Shown one piece after another: positions 2,407-64,000 of a DNA stretch of 64,000 bases (position 1 is the stretch's first letter; each line of letters opens with the position of its first letter). Origin of the DNA: Trichosphaerium sp. ATCC 40318 (lineage: Eukaryota; Protista; Tubulinea). The notes beneath the pieces were generated by a model, which had not been told where the DNA came from, did no database searches, and saw only the letters and a list, made by a program, of their open reading frames with translations. The translations under genes were made by a program, and so were the position numbers. The stretch spans positions 88,233-152,232 of the forward strand of contig JALMLS010000323.1 of assembly GCA_038496445.1 (NCBI GenBank), given 5' to 3'.

Positions 2407-2477
2407 GGGACAATGGTGTAACGGAAGCACATGGCATTGAAGGTGCTGCAGTTCAGGTTCGATTCCTGGTTGTCCTA
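2407..2477 (+). tRNA. tRNA with GAA anticodon (Phe), atypical body; copy 1
   Basis: Cloverleaf: GGGACAA/TTGTCCT, D stem GTGT/GCAC, anticodon stem TGGCA/TGCTG with loop TT-GAA-GG, T arm TCAGG-TTCGATT-CCTGG. Confidence 0.8.
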
Positions 2478-2485
2478 CATACCTT

Positions 2486-2572
2486 GCAGAGGTGCTCGAA
2501 TTGGTTAATGAGGTTGTGTTCAAGACACAATGTGATGAAAATCACGTGTGGGTTCGAGTCCCACTCTCTGCA
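2486..2572 (+). tRNA. tRNA-Leu(CAA), copy 1, followed by T7 Pol III terminator
   Basis: GCAGAGG/TCTCTGC acceptor; TTGTG-TT-CAA-GA-CACAA anticodon arm; long variable arm; GTGGG-TTCGAGT-CCCAC; T7 at 2573-2579. Confidence 0.93.
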
Positions 2573-2723
2573 TTTTTTTGACATTGTTCAATACAATAAA
2601 GTAGACGCCAAACATGCTAAACACTATCGACAAAAGCCTTTTTGAAACTATTTTACAAGCGCCTGCTATCTTTTTGTCAAATAAAGTCAATTCTGACTTG
2701 GTCTGCCTTTGTACACAACGAAA

Positions 2724-4132: not shown

Positions 4133-4594
4133 ATGGCGTCAAACAATGGCACTGCCTTACCACAGCTTGGTTGGAGGGAAAATGCTTCAATACCTGAATT
4201 AGGGATTGATTGTATATCAGCGAAGGTAGATACAGGCGCAAGAACGTCATCTCTTGATATAGATAGTGTCACTGAGTTTTCAAAGGACGGGAAGCAGATG
4301 TTGAAGATTAAATTACGTCCTTGTAAAAAAATCAAGTTTTCTTCAAAACAAGTTGTCGTACCATTGCATGATAAGAGGTCTGTGAAGAATTCAGGTGGTA
4401 TTTCTCAAATTAGATATGTTATAAGCACGTATGTTGTGATTGGAGACAAGAGAACAAAAGCTGAGCTTACACTTGCAAAAAGGAAGAATATGATTTTTCC
4501 AATGTTGATTGGGCGTACAACACTTTGTGGTAACTATGTTGTAAACCCTTCTCTTTCGTATAATATGGGTGATCCGAAGAAGTCTTTTGATTGA
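4133..4594 (+). CDS. Bacterial-type RimK-associated retropepsin-like protease ('putative ATP-dependent Zn protease' family), intronless
   Basis: GWRE..IPELGI..ISAKVDTGARTSSL, R.VKNSGG...RYVI and ELTL..R..M.FPMLIGR motifs. Confidence 0.85.
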   Translation: MASNNGTALPQLGWRENASIPELGIDCISAKVDTGARTSSLDIDSVTEFSKDGKQMLKIKLRPCKKIKFSSKQVVVPLHDKRSVKNSGGISQIRYVISTYVVIGDKRTKAELTLAKRKNMIFPMLIGRTTLCGNYVVNPSLSYNMGDPKKSFD

Positions 4595-25037: not shown

Positions 25038-26363
25038 ATGAAAACACTACTCTTAGCAAGTATTGCGTTATTCTTTGTCCTCCATTTTGGTAACATAAAC
25101 ACTGCTGAAGTATGCGCCAACTACGGTCAAGTCGATACTGCATCACGTGATCTCTATGTCCTAAACAATGGATACAATATCGATGTATCTAAAGCGGATA
25201 TTTGTTGTTGGCTAGATAACGGCAATCGATGGGGTGGAAGGATTGACTTTAAACAAACAACAGGTGGAGCAGGCGTTTCAATAATGTGGGGTAAATGGCC
25301 GTTTTCTGCTATTTGGACTACCGGTAGTTATCCTATACATATCAATGCAGTAGAACCACAATACAGCGAATGGAACTTTAACCTTGGTAGCACCTCAGTT
25401 TCTAACTGGAACATGTACGTTCAATTGTGTACTCTTCTTTTTTGTGCTATTTTATTACCTTTTGTCGGGTTTGATCACGTGCTGACATGTTTTTCAGGTT
25501 TTGGGAGATATGGACGCAACCATGTCCTACAGCTGATTGTATAAGACAAGTAGCAGGAGACGTTATGGTTCATCCTAGATACGGAGAAGTAAGTCTTGGA
25601 CCAAAGTTTGGATCTGTAACTTTTGATGGTGTTTCATGGGATGTAGTAGCACAACCTCCAACAAATACAAGATCATATTACATCGTACACTACTACCGCA
25701 GACCTCAAACAACACGTACAGGTACGTTGAAAGAGTTTTCTTACTTTCTTCTAATTCTCTCTTTGTATAGGTCGTGTTAACCTTACACCTTTCTGGCGAC
25801 ATTCTAGAGACAACGGATGGGCTTCTGGATATGTCACTGGCATCACAGCTGGATTAGAAATGTCAAGAGGTCGTGGAAGTTTCACAACAACAAAATTTGT
25901 TTTGGATACAACACGTCCTACTGGATCTCCTCCACCGCCTATGTCATTTGTTCTCGATGGAAAACATCGTATGAGAGATACTTGGAATGGGCTGTACGCA
26001 ACAGCTGCTACAAGAGTAAATTTTGCTCAAATGAAGGTGAACAATAAACTCTCGCATCCAAGGCAAAAGTTCTTCTTTGAAAAGATTAGTGGTGATAGAT
26101 ACAGGATAAAGAATGAATGGACTAATAAGTATATCAATGCAGCTAATGATGTTCAATGGACACCACTAAACGGTTCACCAAGCGCTGCAGGAACAGCAGC
26201 ACAATGGGTAGCTCAGAAAATTGCAGGACAGAGGTATCGGTTCAGGAATGTCTGGAATGGCATGTACATCACATCAAGCGCAAACAACGACCAGAAGCTG
26301 CAACAAGCATACTTGAACACAGCATGGACATCTCAAATATGGAATATTGAGGACGCTAACTAA
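25038..26363 (+). CDS. Secreted GH12-like domain + ricin-type beta-trefoil (CBM13-like)
   Basis: Signal peptide; YVLNN, WNM-FWEIW, GDVMVH, GSVTFDGVSWDV, ITAGLE pattern of the GH12 fold; three YR.KN.W..Y / QxW subdomains after a P-rich linker. Confidence 0.7.
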
Positions 26364-26524
26364 TGGAAAATCGTGCTTTTGTTTGTATACAATAAAAATA
26401 CATCAATCATGCTCTTGAGTTTCTTTTACCTTTTAGTGCAATATATACAGTGTAGATAAGATCTAGATCAAGGAACATGACTTTTTGATCCGGTGCAATC
26501 TCGTTGAATAGTAGATAAACACAT

Positions 26525-26595
26525 GGGACAATGGTGTAACGGAAGCACATGGCATTGAAGGTGCTGCAGTTCAGGTTCGATTCCTGGTTGTCCCA
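26525..26595 (+). tRNA. tRNA with GAA anticodon (Phe), copy 2
   Basis: Same cloverleaf as 2407-2477 but with G1-C72. Confidence 0.8.
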
Positions 26596-26603
26596 CATAC
26601 GTT

Positions 26604-26691
26604 GCAGAGGTGCTCGAATTGGTTAATGAGGCTGCGTTAAGGACGCAGTGTGGTGTGTAACCACGTGTGGGTTCGAGTCCCACTCTCTGCA
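26604..26691 (+). tRNA. tRNA-Leu(AAG)
   Basis: Same acceptor, D and T arms as the Leu(CAA) copies; anticodon arm CTGCG-TT-AAG-GA-CGCAG; T7 terminator. Confidence 0.93.
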
Positions 26692-26908
26692 TTTTTTTGA
26701 TTATGACAGAAAAAGCAAGTTTATTGACATTTGAACAAAATAACACAAGCGCGTTGGGAAGAACGATTTAAAAAGTTCGCAGTTTAACACATAAAATAGA
26801 CGTTGAATCTTGGTAGCAACCATAAATTTGAAGCATTTTTAAACTGTTGGCAATACATATACAGAAGCAATAGAGTTTTATTATATTACAGGCCGACTAG
26901 GTCTATTC

Positions 26909-28658
26909 TTATGATCCTCCAGTAGAAAATTTAGATTGCAAAAACCCTGCCTCTTGCATTGCACGTTGACGCCTAATTAAGATGTGAGAAAAAATCCAGC
27001 AAGGCATCTATGACGTTTAAAAAAAAACAAGAAAAAAGAAAAAAAAAAAGAAAACTGTTCAGGCACACCTTGTCAAAAGGTGAACTCTGATAAGGCTTTT
27101 TGTTGTTGTTAATGTTAATAATCTTACTTCTTTGGATCTATTGTTCGTTTTATCAAATCTGTATCTCTATCCCAGTAAGGCTTAGAAGCCAAGAATGGAT
27201 TTTTTGGTTTTTTATCCTTTTTCTTTTTACTTTTCTTATGTCTTCTTTTATGCTTTTTATCTTTATGCCTCTTATGTTTATGCTTCTTATCTTTATGTTT
27301 CCGCCGTTTACTCTTTTTTCTTCTTCTATCACTATCACTACTACTGCTACTGCTCTCTGAGCTTGATGACTCTGAGCTACTGCTTTCATCAGAGTCCTTA
27401 TCTTTCTCTTCTAAATGCATTTCAAATAAAGATTTACTTCTATGTTTAGCCTAAGAAAAACATTTTAACATAAAGAATACAAGCAATCACGAATAAAAAA
27501 AAACCAAAAAAATCAGATTTCTAATTTTTTTTCGTCTCATCACAGAACTTTACAGCTCGAATGAAAATAATATTTTTATCACTAATAATAAAGCATAACA
27601 TATTTTTGTGAGGAGGAGGAATACAAAAGAATTTGAATGAATGTTCTGTATATACACAATAATGTATTGACAAAAAAAAAAAAAAAGATCCACGAAATTG
27701 AATCTCAAGTGTCAAAGTGTCACTTTTTTTTTCGTTTTGACTAATTTTGTTAGCAATACAATTATTACCACATTGAATATACAATAGAACTACTAGCGTT
27801 AACGTATATATTCGTTGCCTCACGGATAAAATAAAATAATAAAAAAAATGATATTTCTGTAAACTCGTACATTGTACTGTTTAATTTCAGCTTCTTCACG
27901 CTCTCTCTTCTCTCTAGCTATACGTTCTGCAACCATTTTCTGTGCATCTCTAATAGACGTTGTTTCTTTTTGTCCTGGAGTTTTTGTCCATGCTTCAGCA
28001 TCACGTTCACTAACACCAGACCTACTGAATCTTTTGACATTCTTTTGCATAATGTCTACAATAAAAGTAACAATTAATAACCGCAAACTCAATTATGAGG
28101 CTCTTTATCCATACCGAAATTAAGTGTTTTTCTTCTACCTTCTGGCATTTCTAACATCCATCCTTCGCGTGCTTTGGGTTTATGCTGAAACGGCAATTAT
28201 TTTTCTTTTAACATTGAATATACGTACAAGAGACGCGTTAGGATCACCACGAAGCCGTGCCCAGTCAGCTGCTGTATTTTTTACTTCTGGTTTTTTAGTT
28301 ACAGGTCTCAATAACTCGCTAAACGAAGGTCCTACTTGCTCTAAACCACCAATTAGCGGTTTTTGATATAAAAACAACAAACCTTTCTCTCCTTTCGAAA
28401 TTCGTCGTTTTTTGGGTTGTGGGGGCTTAGTATCGCTCGTATCATCTGATCCCTAACTTTATTAACGAAAGACGCCAGTAGTCGATCACGTACCGCGCCG
28501 AGCCTCAGCGGACCATCGTCGGGTTGCTTTCTTTTCTCTCCTTGCATTGCGAATAACCAAAAGAAGGAATGACATAACCGTCAAGCGCATTCTCTCCTTA
28601 AACTAAATTTCCAATGTACGCGGTATTTCTGCGGTTACTCACTTGCTGAGAAACTCAT
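26909..28658 (-). CDS. GPALPP1-like / DUF3752 protein (intact copy)
   Basis: Spliced: AREGWMLEMP, EAWTKTP, IKQYN-AKHRSKSLFEMH, PYWDRDTDL, LQSKFSTG. Confidence 0.75.
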
Positions 28659-28942
28659 ATTGCTTTTAAATTTGTCCGTTGCCTCTCGTTACAAAAACAT
28701 GGCTTCATTCTTGATGTTCACTCTACACTTTCTGCCTATGGACCTAAATATGCTTGGATCCAAGCCTAATCGGTACATCAAGAATTGTTCCGTAAAAGGA
28801 CTTTATTCATTGATTTCAATTCAAAAACACCACAATTGTAACGGACAGTTGTGACTTGTGTGGTAACTAGTTTATTATCTATCTACAAACACTTAAACAC
28901 ATACAATCGCTTGATAGCGATATACACACGGAGTCTCTCTAA

Positions 28943-29151
28943 GCACATGTATCAGGATTTAAAGAAGGAAGTTTAGGATTTGATACATTCCTCAGAGGAA
29001 GAAGAAGAAGAGTTGTATTCTCAAGAACAGGTCCAGGTTATCAATCATGGATAACTGTTGAAAGAGAATTGGGTCTTGTACCAGCTGGTACCTTTGATTT
29101 CCAAATTGTGTTCAAGCTTGGTATTAACTTGAACTTTCGAAATTGTAAGAA
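28943..29151 (+). pseudogene. 3' remnant of the CBM6-like-domain gene (intact 3' end at 52900-53120)
   Basis: Near-identical to the reverse complement of 52905-53118 with small frameshifting deletions; rest of gene replaced by ~105 bp of unrelated sequence (28837-28942). Confidence 0.88.
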
Positions 29152-29377
29152 TAACAACTTTTATTTGTTTGGGTAAAACGGTTCAACTTAATGATCTTCC
29201 GAATTTAAGTAGTATTCATTAGTATTCATGACTAGCACTAATTCATTGTTCATGCATGTTAGGCTGCAACAGTAAACTGCGAAACTTTTTAGAAAGTCTG
29301 TGGATTGGTGTCACACTTTTGTCAATTGAAGTAAAATTTCTTTTCTTTTTTATCCTTTTACACGTGATTAGTCATTC

Positions 29378-32332
29378 ATGGCAAAAGTACATTGGTTGGT
29401 TTTACTAGTGCTAGCTTTATCGTATTGCGAGATAATAGTTGTTGGCCCTGAAACGCCAAATACACGCTATGCATCGAGAAAACTTCAAAACTTTTTAACT
29501 ACTGAGCGTTCCCAATGGTACGTAAGGGTTAGAGTCTATATTTTGTTTGTAAACGTGATGTGATGTTGTTGTACGTTAACGGCTTCAAACAGGGAAGTAG
29601 TACAATTTGATGAGCTAAAACACTCTGAAAGAACATTTTCATCGCAAGAACACGTGATTGGAGTCGTTATTGGTTTAAACGATGCTAGACAATTACTGAG
29701 AACTTTCGGCATTTTTACACCTAAACTAGACGAATCTAATATTACCATGGAAGGCTACATTGTATCAACACATGTAACTGAGGTACGTTTCTATTGAGAA
29801 AGTTAAGTAGAATGTTCGGTAGCTTTTTGATCGTTTTCACGTGCGATGTAGACAGTCAAATTGACTTGCGTGTATTCAAATTCTGGTCGCGGTTTGATTT
29901 ATGGTGTACAAGATGTGATAGAGCAAATGAAGCTCGCTGTAGTTTTGAATGATGTTTCAGAAGCCAGTCTTGATTCTGTTTCGGACAAGATTGTTGTTGG
30001 AGCTCGCTTTGAGTACAGGGCACTTAAAATAAACATCCCTTGGAACCCTTACAGAGAAGGTATGAATCTTTAAAAGACACTCCAAAAAGAAAAAGTATAA
30101 ATCTTGTCACGTGCATCTAACAAGCCGAAAATAGGAATTGCTACCTCTCAACATATTCCAACGTTCAAGAATCTTACTTTTTGGGACGCCTATCTTGATA
30201 TGATGGTTGAGAATCGTTTTAACGTCTTATCGTTATGGGGTCTTCATCCTTATCCGTTTATGCTCGAACTAGAAAAATGGCCAAAAGCATGCCAATTTGA
30301 TACAAAAACTCTAGCAGAATGGAAGCTTTATTGGCACGGGCTATTTGATAGAGCACATGAACGCGCCATTGATACATTTATAATAGACTGGTACTCTAAA
30401 AACATAGCTTAGTATTACTTTGTGTAATTTATGTGTTAAGGAATATCTTTGTTTCGGATGGGTACGCTGCTGCGTATGATAAAGGTAACTCAACGGTTTT
30501 TGTTCCCGTTTGTGAAGTTGTAACAAAAACACAGGCGCTTGGACAGATACGTATCATGGTGCTCATAAAGCAATAGAATCTGTTGATTACCAGCAAGAGA
30601 GTGTATACCAGATGCTAAAAGAATACCCTAACATTGGTGGTATAGGATGGGTATGTGGGATTTTTTTGAAAGGAAACCTGTTACGTAACAGCATCTTTAG
30701 GAATTAGCTGAAGCAATGAATGGAATCTCAATACCAGATCGTATCAATTATGGAAATACCAAGTACTTTGGTGCTGTTGCTAGAGCGAACAGATCAGTAT
30801 CTATAATATACAGAGATCCTCAGTTAGGTAAAGATGCAAGTCAAGTAAGGAAAACAATGGAAGAAATGAGCGAAAAACTAAAAATACCAATCTACCTCCA
30901 AGTAAAGTTCGACTGGAGTCACGGGTGTGTACAATACAAATATGTACTATTTGGCTTTAATTAATGTTTAAATAATAGGCATGGTACTACAATGCTCGTA
31001 CATTCTGGAAGTGATTCATCTAATACAACAACGAAAATTTACTGGGATCCTCCACCAACAAAGTACAAACTAGTTTTTCTTTAATATTTGACCTCCGAGT
31101 ACTTCTTCATTCTTTAAAAGCAAACGAGACAAAAAATTCCAGGGCTTCCAATATCACTTCTAGAGTTTCGACGCTTGCGGATTTTTACCTTTTCTGCAAT
31201 ACTATATCGCTACTCACAACGCTTACTGTTTTTCAAAAATAGATACAAAGTCACGTGGATGGTAAGAAATGAGGACTTCTTCTTTCTTAGATGGGGCGGT
31301 TCAGATTTTATAAAGCGTCATATAGCAAATAATGGGTTTGATTGGGTCGCAGGGTATGTAACAGGATCAGAAGGACTCATACCTGCTCTGGAATACGCAG
31401 AACAAAAAAAATACCAAACATGGAATTTTATGTTCGAAAGACAATGGCTTTTCTACATGCAGGTTAGTCTTGTTAGCTCTCAATAGTCAAAAAAACATCA
31501 CCAATAGTATCTTTGTATTCGCTAACATAGCTTTTCTTCAGTGGGGACGGTTGTTGTATGATCCAAATACGTCATCAGATGTCTTTGCTCAAAAGTTTGC
31601 TTCTAAATATGGCACAACACTTGATGTTGCTTCAACAATGTTGCAAGCGATAGACCAAGTTGGAACTGTACCTTTGTCTATTGTTAGATTCGTAGAAAGC
31701 CAATCCGATTTTACGTTACACAGTGAAGCGTTTATAGCTCATTCTAAGTTTATCACTATTGATACGCTTATTGCTTCTCCAACTCTTGATCCTCTGCTTC
31801 AAAACATCCAAAAATTTGTCGATGGTGATAGTCCAGGTAATGCTCAAACGCCTGATCTATTTGCTTTGGAAGTAGAAAAAAATTGTAGTAGTGGATTGGC
31901 TCTGCTGAATAAGGTCAGATCATCGCTACCAGCGTCTGCTCATTTGGAAGTTGCGGTAAGAATTTCTCAGTTTTTTCTTGTTTTTTACATAGAAATCCTT
32001 CGCTTACTCACCCTTTATTTTTGTTGTAGGATATTGATTCCTGGGTAGCTTTGGGACGGTATTTTTCTTCAAAAATCAATGGCGGTATTGCGTTGGCGAA
32101 GTACAGAAAGAATGGAGATAAAGATGAAAAGACAAAAGCTGTTAATTATTTAACGCAAGCACTCGATCAATGGCAAAACCTTGTTAATGCTACGGAATCT
32201 CATTTGAGAGTTGGTATCAACTTGCTAGACCTTGGCGCAAGAGGTACAGGTCCTAATGAGAATAAGAAATACGCATGGAGTGATCAAATTGAGCTTGTTA
32301 AAAAAGACATCCAAACAGCTCAGACCGCATAA
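29378..32332 (+). CDS. Secreted putative glycoside hydrolase (GH20/GH67-type N-terminal domain + bacterial-like catalytic region)
   Basis: Signal peptide; EGYIV...GRGLIYGV N-domain; FEYRALKINIPW, FWDAYLDMMVENRFNVLSLWGLHPYP, WMVRNEDFFFLRWG. Confidence 0.7.
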
Positions 32333-51330: not shown

Positions 51331-51847
51331 GGTGGTCTTTTATAAGATGAATTAAATAGTCACGTGGCGAGTTGAAAGTCCGGCAAAATAATTTTTGCGT
51401 GGTTACGTTTCAACACACAAAAATAACTACATGCCCAAACAATGGCTGTTGGGAGCTTTGAAATGGTAGTGACTTAACGTGATTCAAGTATTGGTGAGAC
51501 AGCCTTAATCGAATCACAAGTGTTAAGTAAGTCCTAGTGCCTGCCTTACATATTACAGGCAGTGACATTGGAAGCTTGCTACTAATGCTACATAATCAAG
51601 ACAGGTGCACCATGTAGAACGACAACACGTGAGTTATAACCTTTTCAGAAAAAGAAACAGGAGACTATAGCAATTATTTACCTTGGTTTTGTTGTAACGC
51701 TTCATCTGTTGTTGACTTTGAGGTTATTAGTTAACGACTACTGTAGATTAGGGCTATTAAAAATGACACTTGTAGGTAGCATTGGTACTAATAAATTGAC
51801 ATTGGAGAGACTGGTTTACCAAGCGTACTTGCTTCTCATCAAAAAAA

Positions 51848-51934
51848 TGCAGAGAGTGGGACTCGAACCCACACGTGATTTTCATCACATTGTGTCTTGA
51901 ACACAACCTCATTAACCAATTCGAGCACCTCTGC
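51848..51934 (-). tRNA. tRNA-Leu(CAA), copy 3
   Basis: Reverse complement matches 2486-2572. Confidence 0.93.
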
Positions 51935-51942
51935 AACGTATG

Positions 51943-52013
51943 TGGGACAACCAGGAATCGAACCTGAACTGCAGCACCTTCAATGCCATGTGCTTCCATT
52001 ACACCATTGTCCC
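51943..52013 (-). tRNA. tRNA with GAA anticodon (Phe), copy 3
   Basis: Reverse complement matches copy 2 except C16>T. Confidence 0.8.
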
Positions 52014-52134
52014 ATTTGTTTTATATCTACTATCAACGAGATTGCACGGGATCAAAAAGTCATTTCCTTGATCTAGATGTTATCTACACTGTGATAGCAC
52101 GTTATGTATATATTGTATAAAAGGTCAATGAAAC

Positions 52135-52650
52135 TCAACAAGACGTATTTTTATTGTATACAAACAAAAAGCATATTTTTGATTTTCCATTAGTTAGCTC
52201 CTCAATGTTCCATATTTGAGACGCCCACGCTGTGTTCAAGTATGCTTGTTGTAGCTTCTGGTCGTTGTTTGCGCTTGATGTGATGTACATGCCATTCCAA
52301 ACATTCCTGAACCGATACCTCTGTCCTGCAATTTTCTGAGCTACCCATTGTGCTGCTGTTCCTGCAGTGCTTGTAGAACCGGTCAATGGTGTGCATTGAA
52401 TATCATTAGCTACATTGATATACTTATTAGTCCATTCACTCTTTATCTTGTATCTATCACCACTAATCTTTTCAAAGAAGAACTTTGCCGTGGATGCGAG
52501 AGTCGCGTACCATTGGGAACGCTCAGTAGTTAAAAAGTTTTGAAGTTTTCTCGATGCATAGCGTGTATTTGGCGTTTCAGGGCCAACAACTATTATCTCG
52601 CAATACGATAAAGCTAGCACTAGTAAAACCAACCAATGTACTTTTGCCAT
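52135..52650 (-). CDS. Chimeric ORF: exon 1 (signal peptide) of the 29378 gene fused to the partial ricin domain of the 25038 gene
   Basis: First 48 aa identical to ORF 29378; aa ~56-151 match the C-terminus of ORF 25860; junction at 52503-52506. Expression unknown. Confidence 0.6.
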   Translation of the reverse strand: MAKVHWLVLLVLALSYCEIIVVGPETPNTRYASRKLQNFLTTERSQWYATLASTAKFFFEKISGDRYKIKSEWTNKYINVANDIQCTPLTGSTSTAGTAAQWVAQKIAGQRYRFRNVWNGMYITSSANNDQKLQQAYLNTAWASQIWNIEELTNGKSKICFLFVYNKNTSC

Positions 52651-52899
52651 GAATGACTAATCACGTGTAAAAGGATAAAAAAAGAAAAGAAATTTTACTT
52701 CAATTGACAAAAGTGTGACACCAATCCACAGACTTTGTTAAAAGTTTCGCAGTTTACTGTTGCAGCCTAACATGCATGAATAATGAATGAATAGTGCTAG
52801 TCATGAATACTACTTAAATTCGGAAGATCATTAAGGTTGAACCGTTTTACCAAACAAATAGAAGTTTTTTATTGGTTTCATTGTTATTTAGGATGCTTT

Positions 52900-55800
52900 C
52901 TAAATTCTTACAATTTCGAAAAAGTTCAAGTTAATACCAAGTTTCGTGAACACAATTTGGAAATCAAAGGTACCAGCTGGTACAAAACCCAATTCTCTTT
53001 CAACAGTTATCCATGATTGATAACCTGGACCTGTTCTTGAGAATACAACTCTTCTTCTTCTTCCTCTGAGGAATGTATCAAATCCTAGACTTCCTCCTTT
53101 AAATCCTGATACACGTGCTCTTAATAAGTACTGTCCAGGCTCAGCAAAAGTGATATTGTATGTAACAAACTCGTTACGTTGTATCCACCCGATGAAACAC
53201 CCTGAATTTGGGTATTCTGGGTCTATCGCAGGTGCCATATCAATACTATTTCCTCCGGCACAGCTTAAGGTGTTGTCACATGTAGGTCTACCTAAATCAA
53301 GCATGGTGAGATCTTGACATAGAATGTAGTCTTCTGCTGCAATAAGTCCTGGTTCCATTGGTGCTGGGGCTTCTGTTGTTGGAGGCAACGTTGTTGGAGG
53401 TAAAGTAGTAGGCGGTAATGTTGTTGGAGGTAAAGTCGTTGGCAGTGGTATATAGTCAATTGCAGCAATGTTAGCCAAATCCCAATCTGCAAGGAAAGGT
53501 CCTACAGTGAATGTAGCAATATCAATTTCAAACAACTGCTCTGGATCATTAAAATCTCTGTAGTCACATAGCATAATTAACGTGGCATCATTTACTGATG
53601 TTATTGCTGAACAAAAAAATGAGTAACTTTTAAGTTGTTTTGTTTACTTACATCTTGGTTGACAATCACCAGTATCAAGGATCGCTACTTGAGCGCATGT
53701 GTCAAAATTGACTTTAAAGATACCATTAGAATCAGTGAGGTATATGAAACCACCAACAATTTCGACTACATGCAATTAGTAAGAGATAGATTCGTTCAAA
53801 GGAAAAAAATAAGAAAACGCACAGTCAAAAGTATATTTAGGCAATAGGCATTTTTGAGCTAGTGAGCATTCATTTAAGTCAATCGCCATTAGCCTTTCCT
53901 GAAGCAAACCACCGTATAATTGTCCAGTGCTGTCATCAATACCAAAACCATATATTTCGTGAGGTACTTGACAACGTTTGTCCTTAACACAAAGAGTTAA
54001 GGAAGATTTGGGTCACAGAAATCCAAAAACAAAAATTGCAAGTCGTAGTTAACGTACCACTTGGCAGGTAACTGGATCAATCGTAAAAATCTCAACAGTC
54101 TGTTCGCCAAAAGCCTTAATAGTAACCAGCCTGTCTTCAAGAGGAGAATACACTAACGGACCAACAAATACTGATTCAAACTGTCGGCATGCTTAATAAC
54201 AAAGTTAGTACAGGGTCAAAAGTTGGTGCCGTACAGGTAAGTTCATTCGTAAGGTCGTTCCTATTGTATATTTCATAACTAGTGCCGCCTGAATTTAAAA
54301 TAAAATCGCGGTTTGCTGGTCTTGATCCAGCAGGATTAGGTGCCAAAGTAGTAGGAGCTAATGTTGGAGGCAATGGTGTAGGGTTGTAATTCATAGATGC
54401 TACAGATCCAGAGGCAGGCAGAGCTGTGCTGAAAACTCCCACTTCAGAAAAACTTGGAATATCAAACTCTACATAGCCGCCCGTTGTGCATGCTATAATT
54501 AGCGTATCACTAGAAATGGCCGTCATTCCTAAAGCACGTGTTAGAGAAAAAGTTTGGATGTTGTTTCCATGTTGTTACCTGTAGGTCTGCAACTATTAAC
54601 TCGTTATTCGTAACAAAAAAAAAAATTACGCGTAACAAATTTTAATAAAAACCCCTGTTGACCATGACAACATTAATACCGCTACATTTGTTACCTATTC
54701 CAATAGTTTAAAAGTCGCTTCACGCAAAATAAAACGCAAACCGTTACACAATCATGAAATCGCGTAAACGCTGTGCTGCTACGCGTCAATTACTGCTTGA
54801 AGGTGTCAGCCGGACGCAGGAGCAGGTGATAGCCTAAAATCGCTAAAATATCGCGCACTCAGACATAAAACAATTTAAAAGCCAACAGGAAGAGACAAAT
54901 GCAAACGACAGAGCAGATTGAAAGCTAAACAAAGTTATTGATGAAGGTTGGCGAGTTTTGACACATGCGCAAATTTTCCTTCCCCGAAATTGAGCATGTC
55001 TCTAAACCCAGTAGCAAAACTGGGAGTTCCAATACAATGCAAAGACAGTGTTTGAGTGGTTGGTAATAAGTCAGAGTTAATTGATAGACTTTTAAAGGCA
55101 CGTGATCCTACTTTTGAATTCAGCTTTAATATCCATATTAAGCTAGTTTTTGGGGCTGTTCAGCTGTGATACATTCATTTTATACAACTCACTTTGATGT
55201 TGTTGATCATGCTAATCAAACTAAATGGAGTACTTCAATGCCTGGGCAGTGTATAGAGCAAAACTATCGAATGATTACGGGAATTATGAAAATGACAATG
55301 ACATCCCTGTAGCCATCACAGATTACAATATAGTATCCAAGTGTCCTGACCATGATCAAATACATCTTGTACTTGCAAAGGCCTTGTGCTATGGTGACGT
55401 TTTATAATTCTGAATAAATTGTATTTTTTTTTGTTGGACACTCAAAAAACAATCCGAAAAATGCTATCACCAATAGGTACCTTTAAAAAAGATGGTGTTA
55501 GTTGAAGGAGATGCTGTATTTCAGACGATCAAATGATCAATATTGACTAAGTGCACAATATTAGCATAAAAATGAATAGTTACAAACACACAAAAGATAC
55601 AAAAAACCATTTTCTGAACCTGTTTGTAGCTAACTGTAACAAACCTTTTAAACCTAGAACTCATATATAAGCAATATAAAGACGCTAGAAAGTGAAATTA
55701 CTAAAAAATTTATTCAAGAGTCTGTGTAGTACATGCGACAACTTTGCAAAAATAAAAAAAACAATCTCAACAATTTTTGAGGTGTCTGTCAATTCTGTCA

Positions 55801-57120
55801 TTACACTAAAAAACTTCAAGTTTAATGAGGTTTGTTTAATACCATTCTATTTTATGTGTTGTATATATAAACAACAATGCTTGGACAAAAGATGGAATAT
55901 TATTGCAAACTTTGTAACAAATACCGAAAAAACCCACTAAAATTGGAATCAGTCAGCTGACTTTGCTGGCTTGTTCACAAATTCCATGATCGCATCAAAG
56001 TATATCCTGCACTTGTAAGCATGATTAAAACGTATATGGCGTTTCTCAAAAAAAAATAAAACAAGGACACTGAGTCACTTGACCAGGAAAAATTTGTTAC
56101 GCGTAACTTTTTTTTTTGTTACGCGTAATGAGATTAAGAGGTGCTGTTCTTGTAGCATTACAGTCTCCGTTTTGAAAGTTTGCAAGCTCGACTACGGTGT
56201 GCTTAAAACCATCGAAATTAAAGAATGTGTAGTAAGCAATGCCATTTACAATCTCAACTAGGGTTCAATTAGCACAATCCAAATAGAATTATACGGATAA
56301 AACAACTATTAACAAAGGAACGAAAAAAAAAAAAGACTGGGGCGCGAGCACTGTAAAACTAAAGTGTCCACTCAAAGGAAGGGGGATGTTCCGAAAAAGT
56401 CTCCGAAAATTGTTTTTTCCGCATTTCTCAAAATTCTTGATTTCAAATACAGTATTCTCGAAATACAGGTATTTCCCAAATTTCGGAACATCTTCCCTCC
56501 TTTGTTTCTATTGACGTACAAGATTCTTCTACACGGCCTTGAACGCGACAGTATAATGAATCTGTACAAGCAACTTCATCATGTGTATAAATTCCTGACG
56601 ATAAAGCAAAATATGTTTGTCCGTTATCTGTTGCTAAAGAGCCAGTTCGAGTATTTCTGCTGCAGAAAGATTCCTAGGTGGAGTATTTAGATTAACAAGG
56701 CAATCAAGTCAAAAAGTCTGTTGCCAGCGGCGTACAATCTCACAAGTGTATGGATCAATAACAAATATATTCTGCCGTAAAAAATCGGGGCTATTGTACT
56801 CTACTTTGTTCGTAATTGGATCGTACACCATTCCGTTTGTTTCATAGTGTAGAACAGGGTCTGTACAAGCTAAATACAACCGTTAGAGCGTACTACAGTA
56901 GTTGGAAAAACGGAGAAATATACTGAGGTTAGTGGTGCGCAATATGATGCGTACTTTGTACTACAGTAGTTAGGTCGCTAAGCAGACGAATTTCAAAGCC
57001 AGGAGCGTTGTTTGTTGTATCGACTGTGCCTACAATCAATGCATTGTTTGTTTGTGCATTGATATAGATAGCAGCTATCGTAAGTAGAACGATTAAATAC
57101 TTCGTAGCAGGTGCACTCAT
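52900..57120 (-). CDS. Secreted protein: two related beta-rich domains, P/T linkers and a C-terminal CBM6-like module; interrupted by a piggyBac-like element
   Basis: Signal peptide; paralogous motifs (VYDP...IFVIDPYTC / VYSP...IFTIDPVTC); (PTTLP)n; I.AEDY...IGWI...E...YNI...G.Y....RV...TG.YQSW.T...INLNF. Confidence 0.7.
54600..56133 (+). mobile_element. Decayed piggyBac-like DNA transposon, TTAA TSD
   Basis: TTAA at 54596-54599 and 56134-56137; ~44-bp imperfect TIRs containing GTTACGCGTAAC; transposase-like remnants VIDE (54934), FYTTHFDVVDHANQ (~55178), NAWAVY (~55237); removal restores the host reading frame. Confidence 0.88.
56373..56504. mobile_element. MITE-like element in an intron
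   Basis: 24-bp terminal inverted repeat with 21/24 match (CAAAGGAAGGGGGATGTTCCGAAA); no clear TSD. Confidence 0.55.
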
Positions 57121-57286
57121 TGTGGTGTTTTTGAATAAAGTCCTTTTACGGAACAATTCTTGATGTACCGATTAGGCTTTGATCCAAGCATATTTAGGTC
57201 CATAGGCAGAAAGTGTAGAGTGAACATTAAGAAAGAAAGAAAGAAGCCAGTATAACGGAGGCAGCGGACAAATTAAAAAAAGCAAT

Positions 57287-58383
57287 ATGGGTTTTCTCAG
57301 CAAGTGAGTAACCGCAGATACCGCGTACATTGGAAATTTAGTTTAAGGAGAGAATGCGCTTGACGGTTATGTCATTCCTTCTTTTGGTTATTCGCAATGC
57401 AAGGAGAGAAGAAAGCAACCGACGATGGTCCGCTGAGTTCGGCGCGGTACGTGATCGACTACCGGCGTCTTTCGTTAATAAAGTTAGGGATCAGATGATA
57501 CGAGCGATACTAAAACCCCACAACCCAAAAAACGACGATTTCGAAAGGAGAGAAAGGTTTGTTGTTTTTATATCAAAAACCGCTAATTGGTGTTTTAGAG
57601 CAAGTAGGACCTTCGTTTAGCGAGTTATTGAGACCTGTAACTAAAAAACCAGAAGTAAAAAATACAGCAGCTGACTGGGCAAGGCTTCGTGGTGATCCTA
57701 ACGCGTCTCTTGTACGTATATTCAATGTTAAAAGAAAAATAATTGCTGTTTCAGAATGTCAAAAGATTCAGTAGGTCTGGTGTTAGTGAACGTGATGCTG
57801 AAGCGTGGACAAAAACTCCAGGACAAAAAGAAACAACGTCTATTAGAGATGCACAGAAAATGGTTGCAGAACGTATAGCTAGAGAGAAGAGAGAGCGTGA
57901 AGAAGCTGAAATTAAACAGTACAATGTACGAGCTTACAGAAATGTCATTTTTTTTTGAATTTTGTTTTATCCCGTGCAACGAACATATACGTTAACGTTA
58001 GTAGTTCTATTGTATATTCAATGTAGTAATAATTGTATTGATAACAAAATTAGTCAAAACGAAAAAAAAGTGACACTTTGACACTTGAGATTCAATTTCG
58101 TGGATTTTTTTTTTTTTTTGTCAATACATTATTGTGTAATACAGACCATTTGAATTCCTTTCTATTCCTCTCTTCCTCACAAAAATATGTTATGCTTTAT
58201 TATTAGTGATAAAAACATTATTTTCATTCGAACTGTAAAGTTCTGTGAGGTGGAAAAAAAATCTCAATGATTTTTTGAAATTGACTGCCTGTTGGATTTT
58301 TTTCTCATATCTTAATTAGGCGTCAACGTGCAATGCAAGAGGCAGGGTTTTTGCAATCTTCATTTTCTACTGGAGGATCATAA
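57287..58383 (+). pseudogene. GPALPP1-like duplicate, pseudogene
   Basis: Paralogue of 26909-28658 with a +1 indel after the ATG, further small indels, loss of the HKPKAREGWML exon and of the K/S-rich exon; last exon out of phase. Confidence 0.85.
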
Positions 58384-58577
58384 AAATAGACCTAGTCGGC
58401 CTGTAATATAATAACTCTATTGCTTCTGTATCTGCTAAATTACGCCATAAGAGTGAATGTGAGTTTAAAATGCTTCAAATTTATGGTTGTTAAACCGAGA
58501 TTAAGTGTATCAACTGTGAACTTTCTGAATTGTTTTTCCCAATGCACTTGCGTTGTTTTGTGACATAGTCAAAAAAA

Positions 58578-58664
58578 TGCAGAGAGTGGGACTCGAACCC
58601 ACACGTGATTTTCATCACATTGTGTCTTGAACACAACCTCATTAACCAATTCGAGCACCTCTGC
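58578..58664 (-). tRNA. tRNA-Leu(CAA), copy 4
   Basis: Reverse complement matches 2486-2572. Confidence 0.93.
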
Positions 58665-58672
58665 AACGTATG

Positions 58673-58743
58673 TGGGACAACCAGGAATCGAACCTGAACT
58701 GCAGCACCTTCAATGCCATGTGCTTCCATTACACCATTGTCCC
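58673..58743 (-). tRNA. tRNA with GAA anticodon (Phe), copy 4
   Basis: Matches copy 3. Confidence 0.8.
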
Positions 58744-59130
58744 ATTTGTTTATATCTACTATTCAAAGAGATTGCACCGGATCAAAAAGTCATGTTCCTT
58801 GACCTAGATTTTTCTACACGTTTCAAAAAGTCATGACATAATCTTGATAGAAAAACGCCTGCCGTTCTTACTCAATTTGCTTAGTAGCTGAAGAGGCTGC
58901 GTCGAGAGCATTTTATTTTTATACAAAAGGAAAGACGTATTATCCAAGTATTTACAAGGAAAAATAAATGCAAGTGTACACTACGGTGTTTACTTTTTTT
59001 CGGGTACTGGACTGTTTGTGGTGACTTTTTGCCGGAGGACTAGTATGGAAAATACGTCGGGTCAGTGCACATTCCACTTAATAAAATACAAAAAGTTCCG
59101 ATAAACTAATTTGGCATCACAGAATACGTA

Positions 59131-60460: not shown

Positions 60461-60483
60461 AGTAATATAATAGGCGATTGTCC

Positions 60484-60523
60484 TTTTATACACCTACAAA
60501 CATCCAAAAAATAAATTATGGGA
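60484..60523 (-). promoter_or_regulatory. Type-3 Pol III promoter: DUSE-like TCCCATAA (60523-60516) + TATAAAA (60490-60484)
   Basis: Matches the Dictyostelium upstream sequence element consensus WCCCAYAA at about -63, plus TATA at about -30, as for U6. Confidence 0.78.
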
Positions 60524-61045
60524 TCACTTCACTGAAATATTCAGTGTACTACTCAAAATATGGATAATGCACATTTCAAAACGCTCACAGACCCTTGTAG
60601 TTGCTAGTTTCATGCCTGAGATCAGTATCAGCGATGTCTTTCTTTCTCAAAACGTGCTTGTAAGCGATTGTTTCCTATTTTATACTAAACGAAGAGACAA
60701 CGTGAAATCTCGATGATTTTCATTTGCGTTACTTGTAAAATTACTGCTTCCACACTTTGATTGGAGGTACCGTTATGTACTCTACGCCTTAAAATAACAT
60801 CTGTCGTGGTTTACAGACTTGTAAGTCGCTTGTCGTACTTCTTAGAATCACTATGTTCTTAAGTAGCTCTGCTCACATGGCGACCTTGGAGTATTAGCAC
60901 AGCCCAAGGCTAGGAGGCTCTTTTAAACCTATGAACTCTTTTCATTGCCAGCAACTGGCGAAAAATCTGTGTTGGTTTTTCTTGCTGACGTTTCAGGCAC
61001 TTAATGCACTTGCACAATCACCAAATGCAACATTGTTAAACGAAA

Positions 61046-62661: not shown

Positions 62662-64000
62662 TTATCGCTTTGGGCAAGACAGAGCGTGGTCTAGCTCTCC
62701 GCATAGTCTCTTTATCTCACATAAAGTGTTTCGGAGGCTATGACAATCTGCAGGGTTTGCTTCAAGGCACATTACACGTTGAACAAAGCCGCCGGAAATG
62801 TCGATTTGCGGTACTGCATCTCTACAAAAACAAAATATGAGCTATTTAGTCGGTTAACAACTCTTACCTATCAGGGATGACGTTAACGGCGTATTTGTAA
62901 ATATTCTACACATAAAGTTAATCATTGCAAACTAGAAAAACTACGCGTACTTCGAGGCGAATACCAAGTTTACGTCTTGTCAGCACGAGACCTGGTGCTG
63001 AAAATACTACGGCTGTTTTATTTCTCTTAGTTCCTGCAATCTTTGCAATAGCTCCACCGAGACTGTGACCAGTGAGCATCACGTGCCTTCAATAACATTA
63101 GCAAATCTCATTGCATTGACCTCGAAAATACCTGTCTTTAATCTTATCAATGTATTCAATAACAGGCTTGTAGTAATGTCTCACAGGATTGTTTATCAAA
63201 GACTCTGGAAGTGCAGATATTTTCAAAAGTGAAGCAACTACAAAGTAAACACATTAGTATTATTACTCTTTACATAAAAGGCATACCAAGGCCTGTTGGA
63301 ATCCAGTTTAGCATCGGAACAAAAGATGAAAAAAGTTGGAACATAGACACGTCCATGTAAATGTCAGCATCTATAGTTGATTAGCAATAATACTTTATCT
63401 TCTATGTATTGTGCCTTGCAGAACATCCAATAGTCTAGCAGAAGTACCACGGATTGCTATTACAGAAAGTCCTCTTGACTGGTATAACGTTTAGAATTTG
63501 GTGTTAAATCCAATAATCAAATACGAACCTTTGAATAAAAATCATAGAAGTGGACATTTACGTCGTCTGTCGTGTGTGCACGTATGACATCCCAATCGTT
63601 CGTACTACAAATGCCTTAATTTTGATTGTTGTATTGTATTACATACCCGCCATCTAGACCTTTTACTAATTCTTGTAACCGCAAAGCATGTTTGTCAAAG
63701 CATGTTCCTTCAAAATACGCCTAAAAGAACATTAGATAAATATAGTACACGGTAAACAATATACCATATCCGCTAAAATACCGATATCAATCACATCCAA
63801 CCCGTGCCATCTTTGGCTACATATTTGGTAGCCACCATCGCACTGAGAGACCTGAAAAAATAAGTTAAAAACCAGCATGATATAACAAAAAGATTACATT
63901 TTCTCCAGGCATATAAAATCGATCAAAATCCGAACAATGCATATCCATTTCTTCTTGTTCTTCTTGTAGAAATACACCAAAACTTAATGAGAAAATAACC
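62662..64000 (-). CDS. Lipase class 3 protein, 3' part
   Basis: LSVIAIRGTSA..D, VMLTGHSLGGAIAKI, VFSAPG. Confidence 0.85.

Follow-up and report, generated by a model that had tools for sequence, protein, structure and literature searches.

A permuted, head-to-tail joined copy of a nearby segment with a tRNA-Phe/tRNA-Leu gene pair at either end in Trichosphaerium sp. ATCC 40318

How can a block of host DNA be copied to a second site on the same chromosome, with its order permuted and with the same pair of tRNA genes at both ends? The question is raised by a stretch of 64,000 nucleotides (nt) from Trichosphaerium sp. ATCC 40318, the terminal 64 kb of contig C151 (the window) in an intron-rich genome of 70 Mb with 37% G+C. 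In this window a source segment (A; 26048-29522, plus strand) reappears as a permuted copy (locus B; 51838-58831, minus strand) at a distance of 22 kb on one chromosome. B carries a Phe-Leu tRNA gene pair at either end and lies 5 kb from the contig end, which is window position 64000. A preliminary description had read the arrangement as the footprint of a DNA circle that integrated at a tRNA locus by a Campbell-type crossover. Our analysis gives good support to the view that homology directed a head-to-tail joined copy of A to a tRNA pair already resident at the B site. As to the route, we slightly favour repair of a break at that pair, with outward copying from A and end joining (rough probability 0.35).

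The layout of A and B was determined by self-BLAST of the window, tRNA genes were called with ARAGORN, and Pfam was run exon by exon on unspliced exons, the scan of B covering 10 of its open-frame stretches. On the minus strand, B reads A 26450-29522 followed directly by A 26048-26701. This is a circular permutation, in which the order of the blocks is reversed between the two loci (A-B/C-D becoming B-A/D-C), and it bears out the order proposed earlier. The matching segments are A 26048-26701 and B 52503-51838 (88.7% identity with gaps), A 26450-27006 and B 58819-58286 (82%), A 27507-28043 and B 58276-57753 (92%), A 28182-28809 and B 57757-57132 (94%), and A 28942-29522 and B 53119-52506 (89.6%). 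About 4 kb of B (53120-57131) is absent from A, and A 27006-27507 and A 28044-28181 are absent from B. In order, A contains the end of a ricin-domain gene (the last 316 coding nt and the 3′ untranslated region), a tRNA pair, a GPALPP1-like gene on the minus strand, the remnants of a CBM-like gene, and the promoter and exon 1 of a large secreted-protein gene. The tRNA pair of B at 58.6 kb carries the downstream flank of A and the pair at 52.0 kb its upstream flank, as had been described.

The two ends of A are joined head to tail in B at 52503-52506, again in agreement with the preliminary description. The minus strand reads ..CAATGGTACG / CG / ACTCTCGCATCC.. across the joint, and the sequence to the right of the filler can also be written out as ACTCTCGC. 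The filler CG (52504-52505) matches neither end of A, and there is no microhomology. At the corresponding positions A reads GGTACG followed by TAAGGG on the right side and AATAA followed by ACTCTC on the left side, and the two ends share no homology with each other. The similarity between A and B includes just the first base of the exon 1 splice donor (GTAAGG) before it breaks off, a coincidence that we estimate at about 1 in 40, given an exon border every ~120 nt in this genome. No second copy of the joint was found elsewhere in the assembly, and public metagenome contigs gave no match to it.

The direction of copying is indicated by the gene content. A three-exon ricin-domain gene is whole at A (25038-26363, plus strand; ATG at 25038, stop ending at 26363). 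Its predicted product consists of a signal peptide, a domain without family label, a Pro-rich linker and a three-lobed ricin-type trefoil. The trefoil matches PF14200 with 29-30.6 bits against a cut-off of 25.6; this is the only label above cut-off, so that the earlier ricin label stands, and Pfam did not confirm the labels GH, GPALPP1 and CBM6. B retains the ricin-domain gene only from A 26048 onward, i.e., lobes 2 and 3. Likewise, the many-exon gene at the other end of A begins with an exon 1 of 48 codons that encodes a signal peptide (29378-29521, plus strand) and runs to ~32330, and B retains only its promoter and exon 1, fused to the ricin fragment. Since two multi-exon genes are whole in A and represented in B by fused fragments only, A is to be regarded as the source and copying ran from A to B. 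For the same reason B is ruled out as the ancestral arrangement, a possibility that the preliminary description had named as contrary to its own reading.

The substitution divergence between A and B amounts to 6.7%, 5.9%, 5.3% and 6.1% in the four long segments, which lie to either side of the joint. The first value belongs to the copy of A 26048-26524 (52014-52503, minus strand; ricin lobes 2-3 and 3′ untranslated region), which also shows nine indels, and the last to the copy of A 28942-29522 (52506-53119, minus strand) outside its exon 1 part. This even divergence argues for one event, and all segments of B fit a single age and a single duplicative event. The A/B divergence is ~2-3 times the difference between the haplotypes. 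The second haplotype is represented by contig C490, which is 93.7-98.1% identical to the window (gaps included) and joins it from 53633 onward, so that the joint lies outside C490. As the outer side of B around the 58.6-kb pair, with both copies of a 13-nt motif described below, is present in C490, the event is old and fixed. C490 8855-20629 extends ~11.8 kb past the window end and can be used to lengthen the locus.

The window contains four Phe-Leu pairs, all with Phe(GAA) and a 6-nt spacer. Pair C1, with Leu(CAA), lies 24 kb before A (2407-2573, plus strand) and its flanks are unduplicated. Pair C2, with Leu(AAG), is part of A (26525-26692, plus strand). The two pairs of B both carry Leu(CAA): C3 (51847-52013, minus strand), which is preceded by A's upstream flank, and C4 (58577-58743, minus strand), which is followed by A's downstream flank. 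The genome holds at least 10 such pairs, with the Leu anticodons CAA, AAG, UAA or CAG, and we compared C1-C4 with the pairs on contigs C120, C176, C268 (twice), C5 and C20. About 59 nt before the Phe gene are common to a subfamily consisting of C1-C4 and the pair on C120, and are looser in the pair on C5; the homology available for pairing thus amounts to ~230-250 nt. In B, ~250-260 nt made up of the tRNA pair and its upstream unit are present at both ends, so that the copy exceeds one unit by ~260 nt. The direct repeats flanking B are identical over 183 nt (C3 vs C4) and 96.8% identical over 253 nt.

B begins and ends at the edges of this conserved unit or within ~30 nt of them. The chance that two random breaks in a 7.4-kb unit would fall there is ~1e-5 by our estimate, which argues that a resident tRNA pair served as homology. 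The right limit lies 9 nt past the Leu gene of C3, at the T-run terminator and in register with the pair, and the downstream flank of C3 shows no similarity beyond chance to A, C4 or C1. At the left limit, the similarity to A ends ~88 nt before the Phe gene of C4. Exactly at this limit lies an extra copy of CATGACTTTTTGA, the 13-nt upstream motif of the pair (58823-58835, minus strand). The genome contains 11 copies of this 13-mer, five of them within these pairs, compared with six copies of the reversed control. The extra copy may, though not securely, be what is left of a pair that occupied the B site beforehand and was joined ~40 nt out of register. Directly after C4, ~130 nt are ~17% diverged from A, which we attribute to the high mutation rate beside tRNA genes (PMC6130373). 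Resident DNA was considered for this stretch and ruled out; it is clearly of A type and does not resemble what follows C1 or the pair on C120.

A mismatch in the Leu anticodons, CAA twice in B and AAG in A, had been noted earlier as a caveat to the circle reading. The mismatch itself is real, and the caveat dissolves when the pairs are aligned. C2 differs from C3 and C4 in 12 alignment columns across both tRNA genes and the spacer. Eleven of these columns fall in one block of 30 (columns 260-289) that covers the anticodon arm and the variable arm, and the remaining one, a CpG site, varies between haplotypes as well. The tRNA-Leu of C2 is identical throughout to the Leu(AAG) on contig C176. Only three other columns differ between C2 and the C176 pair, and the spacer base G in C2 is otherwise found only in C3 and C4. 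Pair C2 hence reads as a mosaic, with Phe and spacer as in C3 and C4 and Leu as in the Leu(AAG) of C176. As the block is matched exactly by another Leu(AAG) gene, a short gene conversion explains the mismatch, whether it took place in B or, later than the duplication, in A. In all Leu genes compared here the sequence on either side of the block is identical. More generally, all tRNA-Leu genes in these searches (CAA, AAG, UAA and CAG) lie 4-7 nt after a near-identical tRNA-Phe(GAA), have nearly the same acceptor, D and T arms, and owe most of their differences to the anticodon and variable arms, a pattern that suggests concerted evolution with swaps of blocks among Leu isoacceptors. In addition, a 190-nt stretch of the window (60481-60668) has a 75%-identical copy on contig C5 (positions 4340-4527 of the stretch compared), ~470 nt from the Phe-Leu pair there and in a different relative orientation.

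Under the explanation that we slightly favour, a chromosome break would have struck a resident Phe-Leu pair at the B site, or the DNA next to it, and would have been repaired on the homologous pair in A, 22 kb off, as an ectopic template. New synthesis would then have moved away from the pair on either side. One end would have copied ~6.9 kb through the GPALPP1-like and CBM-like genes to the end of exon 1, and the other ~0.5 kb back into the ricin exon, before both new ends were sealed by end joining that left the 2-nt filler. Synthesis of this kind, with end joining as the last step, is known from break repair in Drosophila and plants. The outcome would be a tRNA pair at each end with the flanks of A swapped, an untouched A, and no need for a free circle. 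Different gene losses in each copy and a short gene conversion of the Leu block in A or B would have followed later. Our preference rests on the position of the site 22 kb from its source among many pairs, on the intact source, and on the fact that no free molecule is needed. The nearness of B to A, with at least 10 pairs in 70 Mb, mildly favours proximity-dependent copying over a diffusing circle.

Several points weigh against this explanation. Circularisation and a tandem route, set out below, predict the same product, and sequence alone does not separate them from break repair. We infer the resident pair, the break and the outward synthesis from the product. Both Leu genes of B are CAA, which requires at least one later conversion. 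The left limit looks ~40 nt out of register, unlike a tidy in-register crossover, and a marginal collinear similarity upstream of it (E 0.085, z ~3.6) blurs its position. The similarity within the pair family can extend ~90 nt upstream, as the pair on C120 demonstrates, which weakens the reading of the extra 13-mer as a remnant. The switch between resident and A-derived DNA can be narrowed only to the interval that starts 88 nt before C4 and closes 18 nt after it.

An alternative that we rate only a little lower is that A, then ~7.4 kb long, was circularised by end joining of 29522 to 26048. The circle would then have entered the resident Phe-Leu pair through one homologous crossover (Campbell-type), or it would have acted as a rolling template for one broken end. 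Reversed order with one joint and a scar of 0-2 nt is an accepted footprint of circular intermediates (PMC7450558), and yeast offers documented cases in which such circles reintegrated (PMC4352087). A crossover inside the pair would leave the entire pair directly repeated on either side of the insert, as is seen, and the right limit is in register. At the left limit, however, a tidy crossover predicts resident DNA up to C4, whereas A-like DNA runs ~88 nt before the Phe gene to the duplicated 13-mer. A crossover would also leave one Leu gene of A's type, and the CAA anticodon of both is reconciled with it only by later conversion. In addition, no second integrated copy of the joint is present in the assembly, and a diffusing molecule, with at least 10 pairs in 70 Mb to choose from, has no reason to pick one that lies 22 kb from its source. 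Of the earlier proposal, recombination with a resident pair fits the limits, and the direct repeats and the right limit agree with a Campbell-type crossover; the absence of a donor-type Leu gene does not, the left limit does not look tidy, and the circle itself is inseparable from rivals that yield the same sequence. Rather unlikely in our view is a route in which a tandem duplication of 26048-29522 at A made the joint, a broken resident pair at B was filled by gap repair when its two ends paired with the two tandem tRNA pairs and the intervening DNA was copied, and A collapsed to one copy later. It yields the exact product with both limits in register, and its donor is close by on the same chromosome. 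Every step of it is a common event, and the identical exon 1 tract described below may mirror sequence exchange between A and B. Its weaknesses are that the second copy at A left no trace, that three separate steps are needed and that the odd left limit is unexplained here as well.

An origin without any resident pair is improbable. On this account, a piece of a concatemer or tandem copy exceeding one unit would have broken beside the tRNA genes, by chance or by fragility, and would have been end-joined at an unrelated site. The left limit does resemble an illegitimate join, but both ends lie tens of nt from the pair edges and would demand a special explanation, and a remnant of a resident pair is the best reading of the additional 13-mer at the left limit. 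Least probable of all, and very unlikely, is an assembly artefact in which sequences near a contig end were wrongly joined. Such a view can point to the distance of 5 kb between B and the end of C151, to the start of C490 inside B at 53633, short of the joint, and to the single occurrence of the joint. On the other side, the ~6% difference between A and B throughout marks B as a separate genomic copy, no repeat common to both sides of the joint is present that could mislead an assembler, the remnants in A bear out the former contiguity of both ends of the CBM-like gene, and the half of B around C4 is independently present in C490. Two further candidates were rejected. Helitron-type capture calls for a 5′ TC, a 3′ CTRR and insertion between A and T, and the unit begins with ACTCTC and ends with GGTACG. 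An integrase-borne element was dismissed, as Pfam detected no integrase or transposase in the 10 stretches of B scanned, which represent part of its frames; outside the CBM-like gene, the content of B is host DNA copied from A.

The joint is spanned by a 171-codon open frame (52135-52650, minus strand) that combines exon 1 (48 amino acids) with two of the three ricin lobes. The fusion was originally out of frame, and a 1-nt deletion ~20 nt past the joint brings the frame back. The fused frame is one trefoil lobe short, has lost a QxW tryptophan and carries a further 1-nt deletion near its stop. In a hand count from the alignment it differs from A at ~10 protein-changing and ~8 silent positions, a ratio near 0.4. 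Selection on the frame was considered and rejected, as these counts, the lost lobe, the lost tryptophan and the two 1-nt deletions give no sign of function. No gene with the exact 171-amino-acid product is on record, and a word search for relatives of 94-299 amino acids found none. Accordingly, we do not claim the fused frame as a working gene; there is no evidence of its expression or conservation. Its exon 1 part is identical to A at 145 of 145 positions (29378-29522 vs 52506-52650), whereas the 45 nt just upstream differ at ~5 positions. At ~6% divergence, the chance of an identical run of 145 nt is ~0.02 by our estimate, and the simplest reading is that the tract possibly reflects a recent gene conversion ending at the joint.

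Following the duplication, each copy evidently lost different genes, A the CBM-like gene and B stretches of exons of the GPALPP1-like gene. The decayed GPALPP1-like copy in B (57132-58286, plus strand) lacks two exon-bearing stretches (A 28044-28181 and 27006-27507). The CBM-like gene encodes a secreted protein whose C-terminus is weakly CBM35/CBM6-like (PF18099 with E 0.027, short of the cut-off); it is present in B (53120-57131, minus strand) and deleted from A. The CBM6-gene position described earlier for A is correct in that A retains both edges of the gene around a 116-nt dispersed repeat, with the ~4-kb body missing. The element of ~116 nt at this deletion site (28810-28941) has copies with 76-95% identity on at least six other contigs (C373, C423, C2, C110, C103 and C251), and it may be a small mobile element or the footprint of one. 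Within the CBM-like gene of B, a piggyBac-like insert of 1.53 kb (54600-56132) is flanked by TTAA on each side. It is absent from C490, where a single TCAA is found (positions 940-990 of the C490 stretch). As the insert is missing from the second haplotype, it is hemizygous, and the insertion is probably recent. The same gene contains a Pro/Thr-coding repeat of PPTTL units (53374-53442) that matches more than 100 places genome-wide. The start of C490 at 53633 lies ~190 nt from this repeat, and the assembly may have broken there.

Comparable rearrangements are known from other organisms. The KIT duplication underlying colour-sidedness in cattle proceeded via circular DNA (Durkin et al. 2012, as cited in PMC12235870), and pairs of circular segmental duplications have been described in humans (Chicote et al. 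2020, PMC7450558), whose authors add that replicative template switching cannot be excluded for their cases. Both share with B the reversed order, one joint with a 0-2 nt scar, a non-tandem copy and a retained source. However, the cattle and human copies comprise one unit inserted without homology, whereas B is ~260 nt longer and its overlap is the tRNA pair at the copy limits, which points to homology with a resident pair. A copy of one unit without terminal overlap, as expected of a circular intermediate, is thus not what B displays, given its overlap of ~250-260 nt. The scale differs as well, ~7 kb in this protist compared with tens to hundreds of kb in mammals. The XylA circle of yeast (PMC4352087) resembles B in that a chromosomal, tRNA-bearing segment was amplified as a circle and returned to the chromosome; it was seen directly and forms tandem repeats at its own locus under selection, whereas B is only a fixed, ~6%-diverged footprint at a second site.

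Synthesis-dependent strand annealing and break-induced replication with end joining or template switching, the class of microhomology-mediated break-induced replication and fork stalling and template switching, share with B an unchanged donor, copying from short homology, a joint without homology and with a small filler, and the closeness of donor and copy on one chromosome; we infer the membership of B in this class from its sequence only. With the integrative elements of bacterial and archaeal tRNA genes, B has in common that tRNA sequence is directly repeated at both ends of the block. It differs in that no integrase or recombinase was present in the frames searched, that the whole two-gene unit and its promoter are repeated instead of a short tRNA 3′ segment, and that its cargo consists of ordinary host genes copied from 22 kb away. 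B is a clean new example of a rearrangement known in cattle, humans and yeast and does not constitute a new class of mechanism.

A broader idea is that Phe-Leu pairs, together with their upstream unit, repeatedly serve as landing pads at which circular or freshly copied DNA is captured. We consider this unlikely. The preliminary description had proposed a search for further permuted duplicates flanked by such cassettes; around the six other pairs (on C120, C176, C268 twice, C5 and C20) only the pairs themselves matched when 10-20 kb stretches, rather than the whole genome, were compared with each other and with the window. If the idea were true, these pairs would have moved gene blocks and fused exons, as in the fusion of a signal-peptide exon with a partial ricin lectin, and gene shuffling in this lineage would be driven quite generally by tRNA genes.

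B provides a base-resolved case of a permuted segmental duplication in a protist. It carries the caution that a reversed block order is no proof of a circle, because outward break-repair copying from a common repeat leaves an identical footprint. What commonly follows a duplication is visible in the differing loss of genes from each copy and in the fused open frame at the joint. The position of its limits at a tRNA pair suggests that short, dispersed tRNA homology can steer where a copied block lands.

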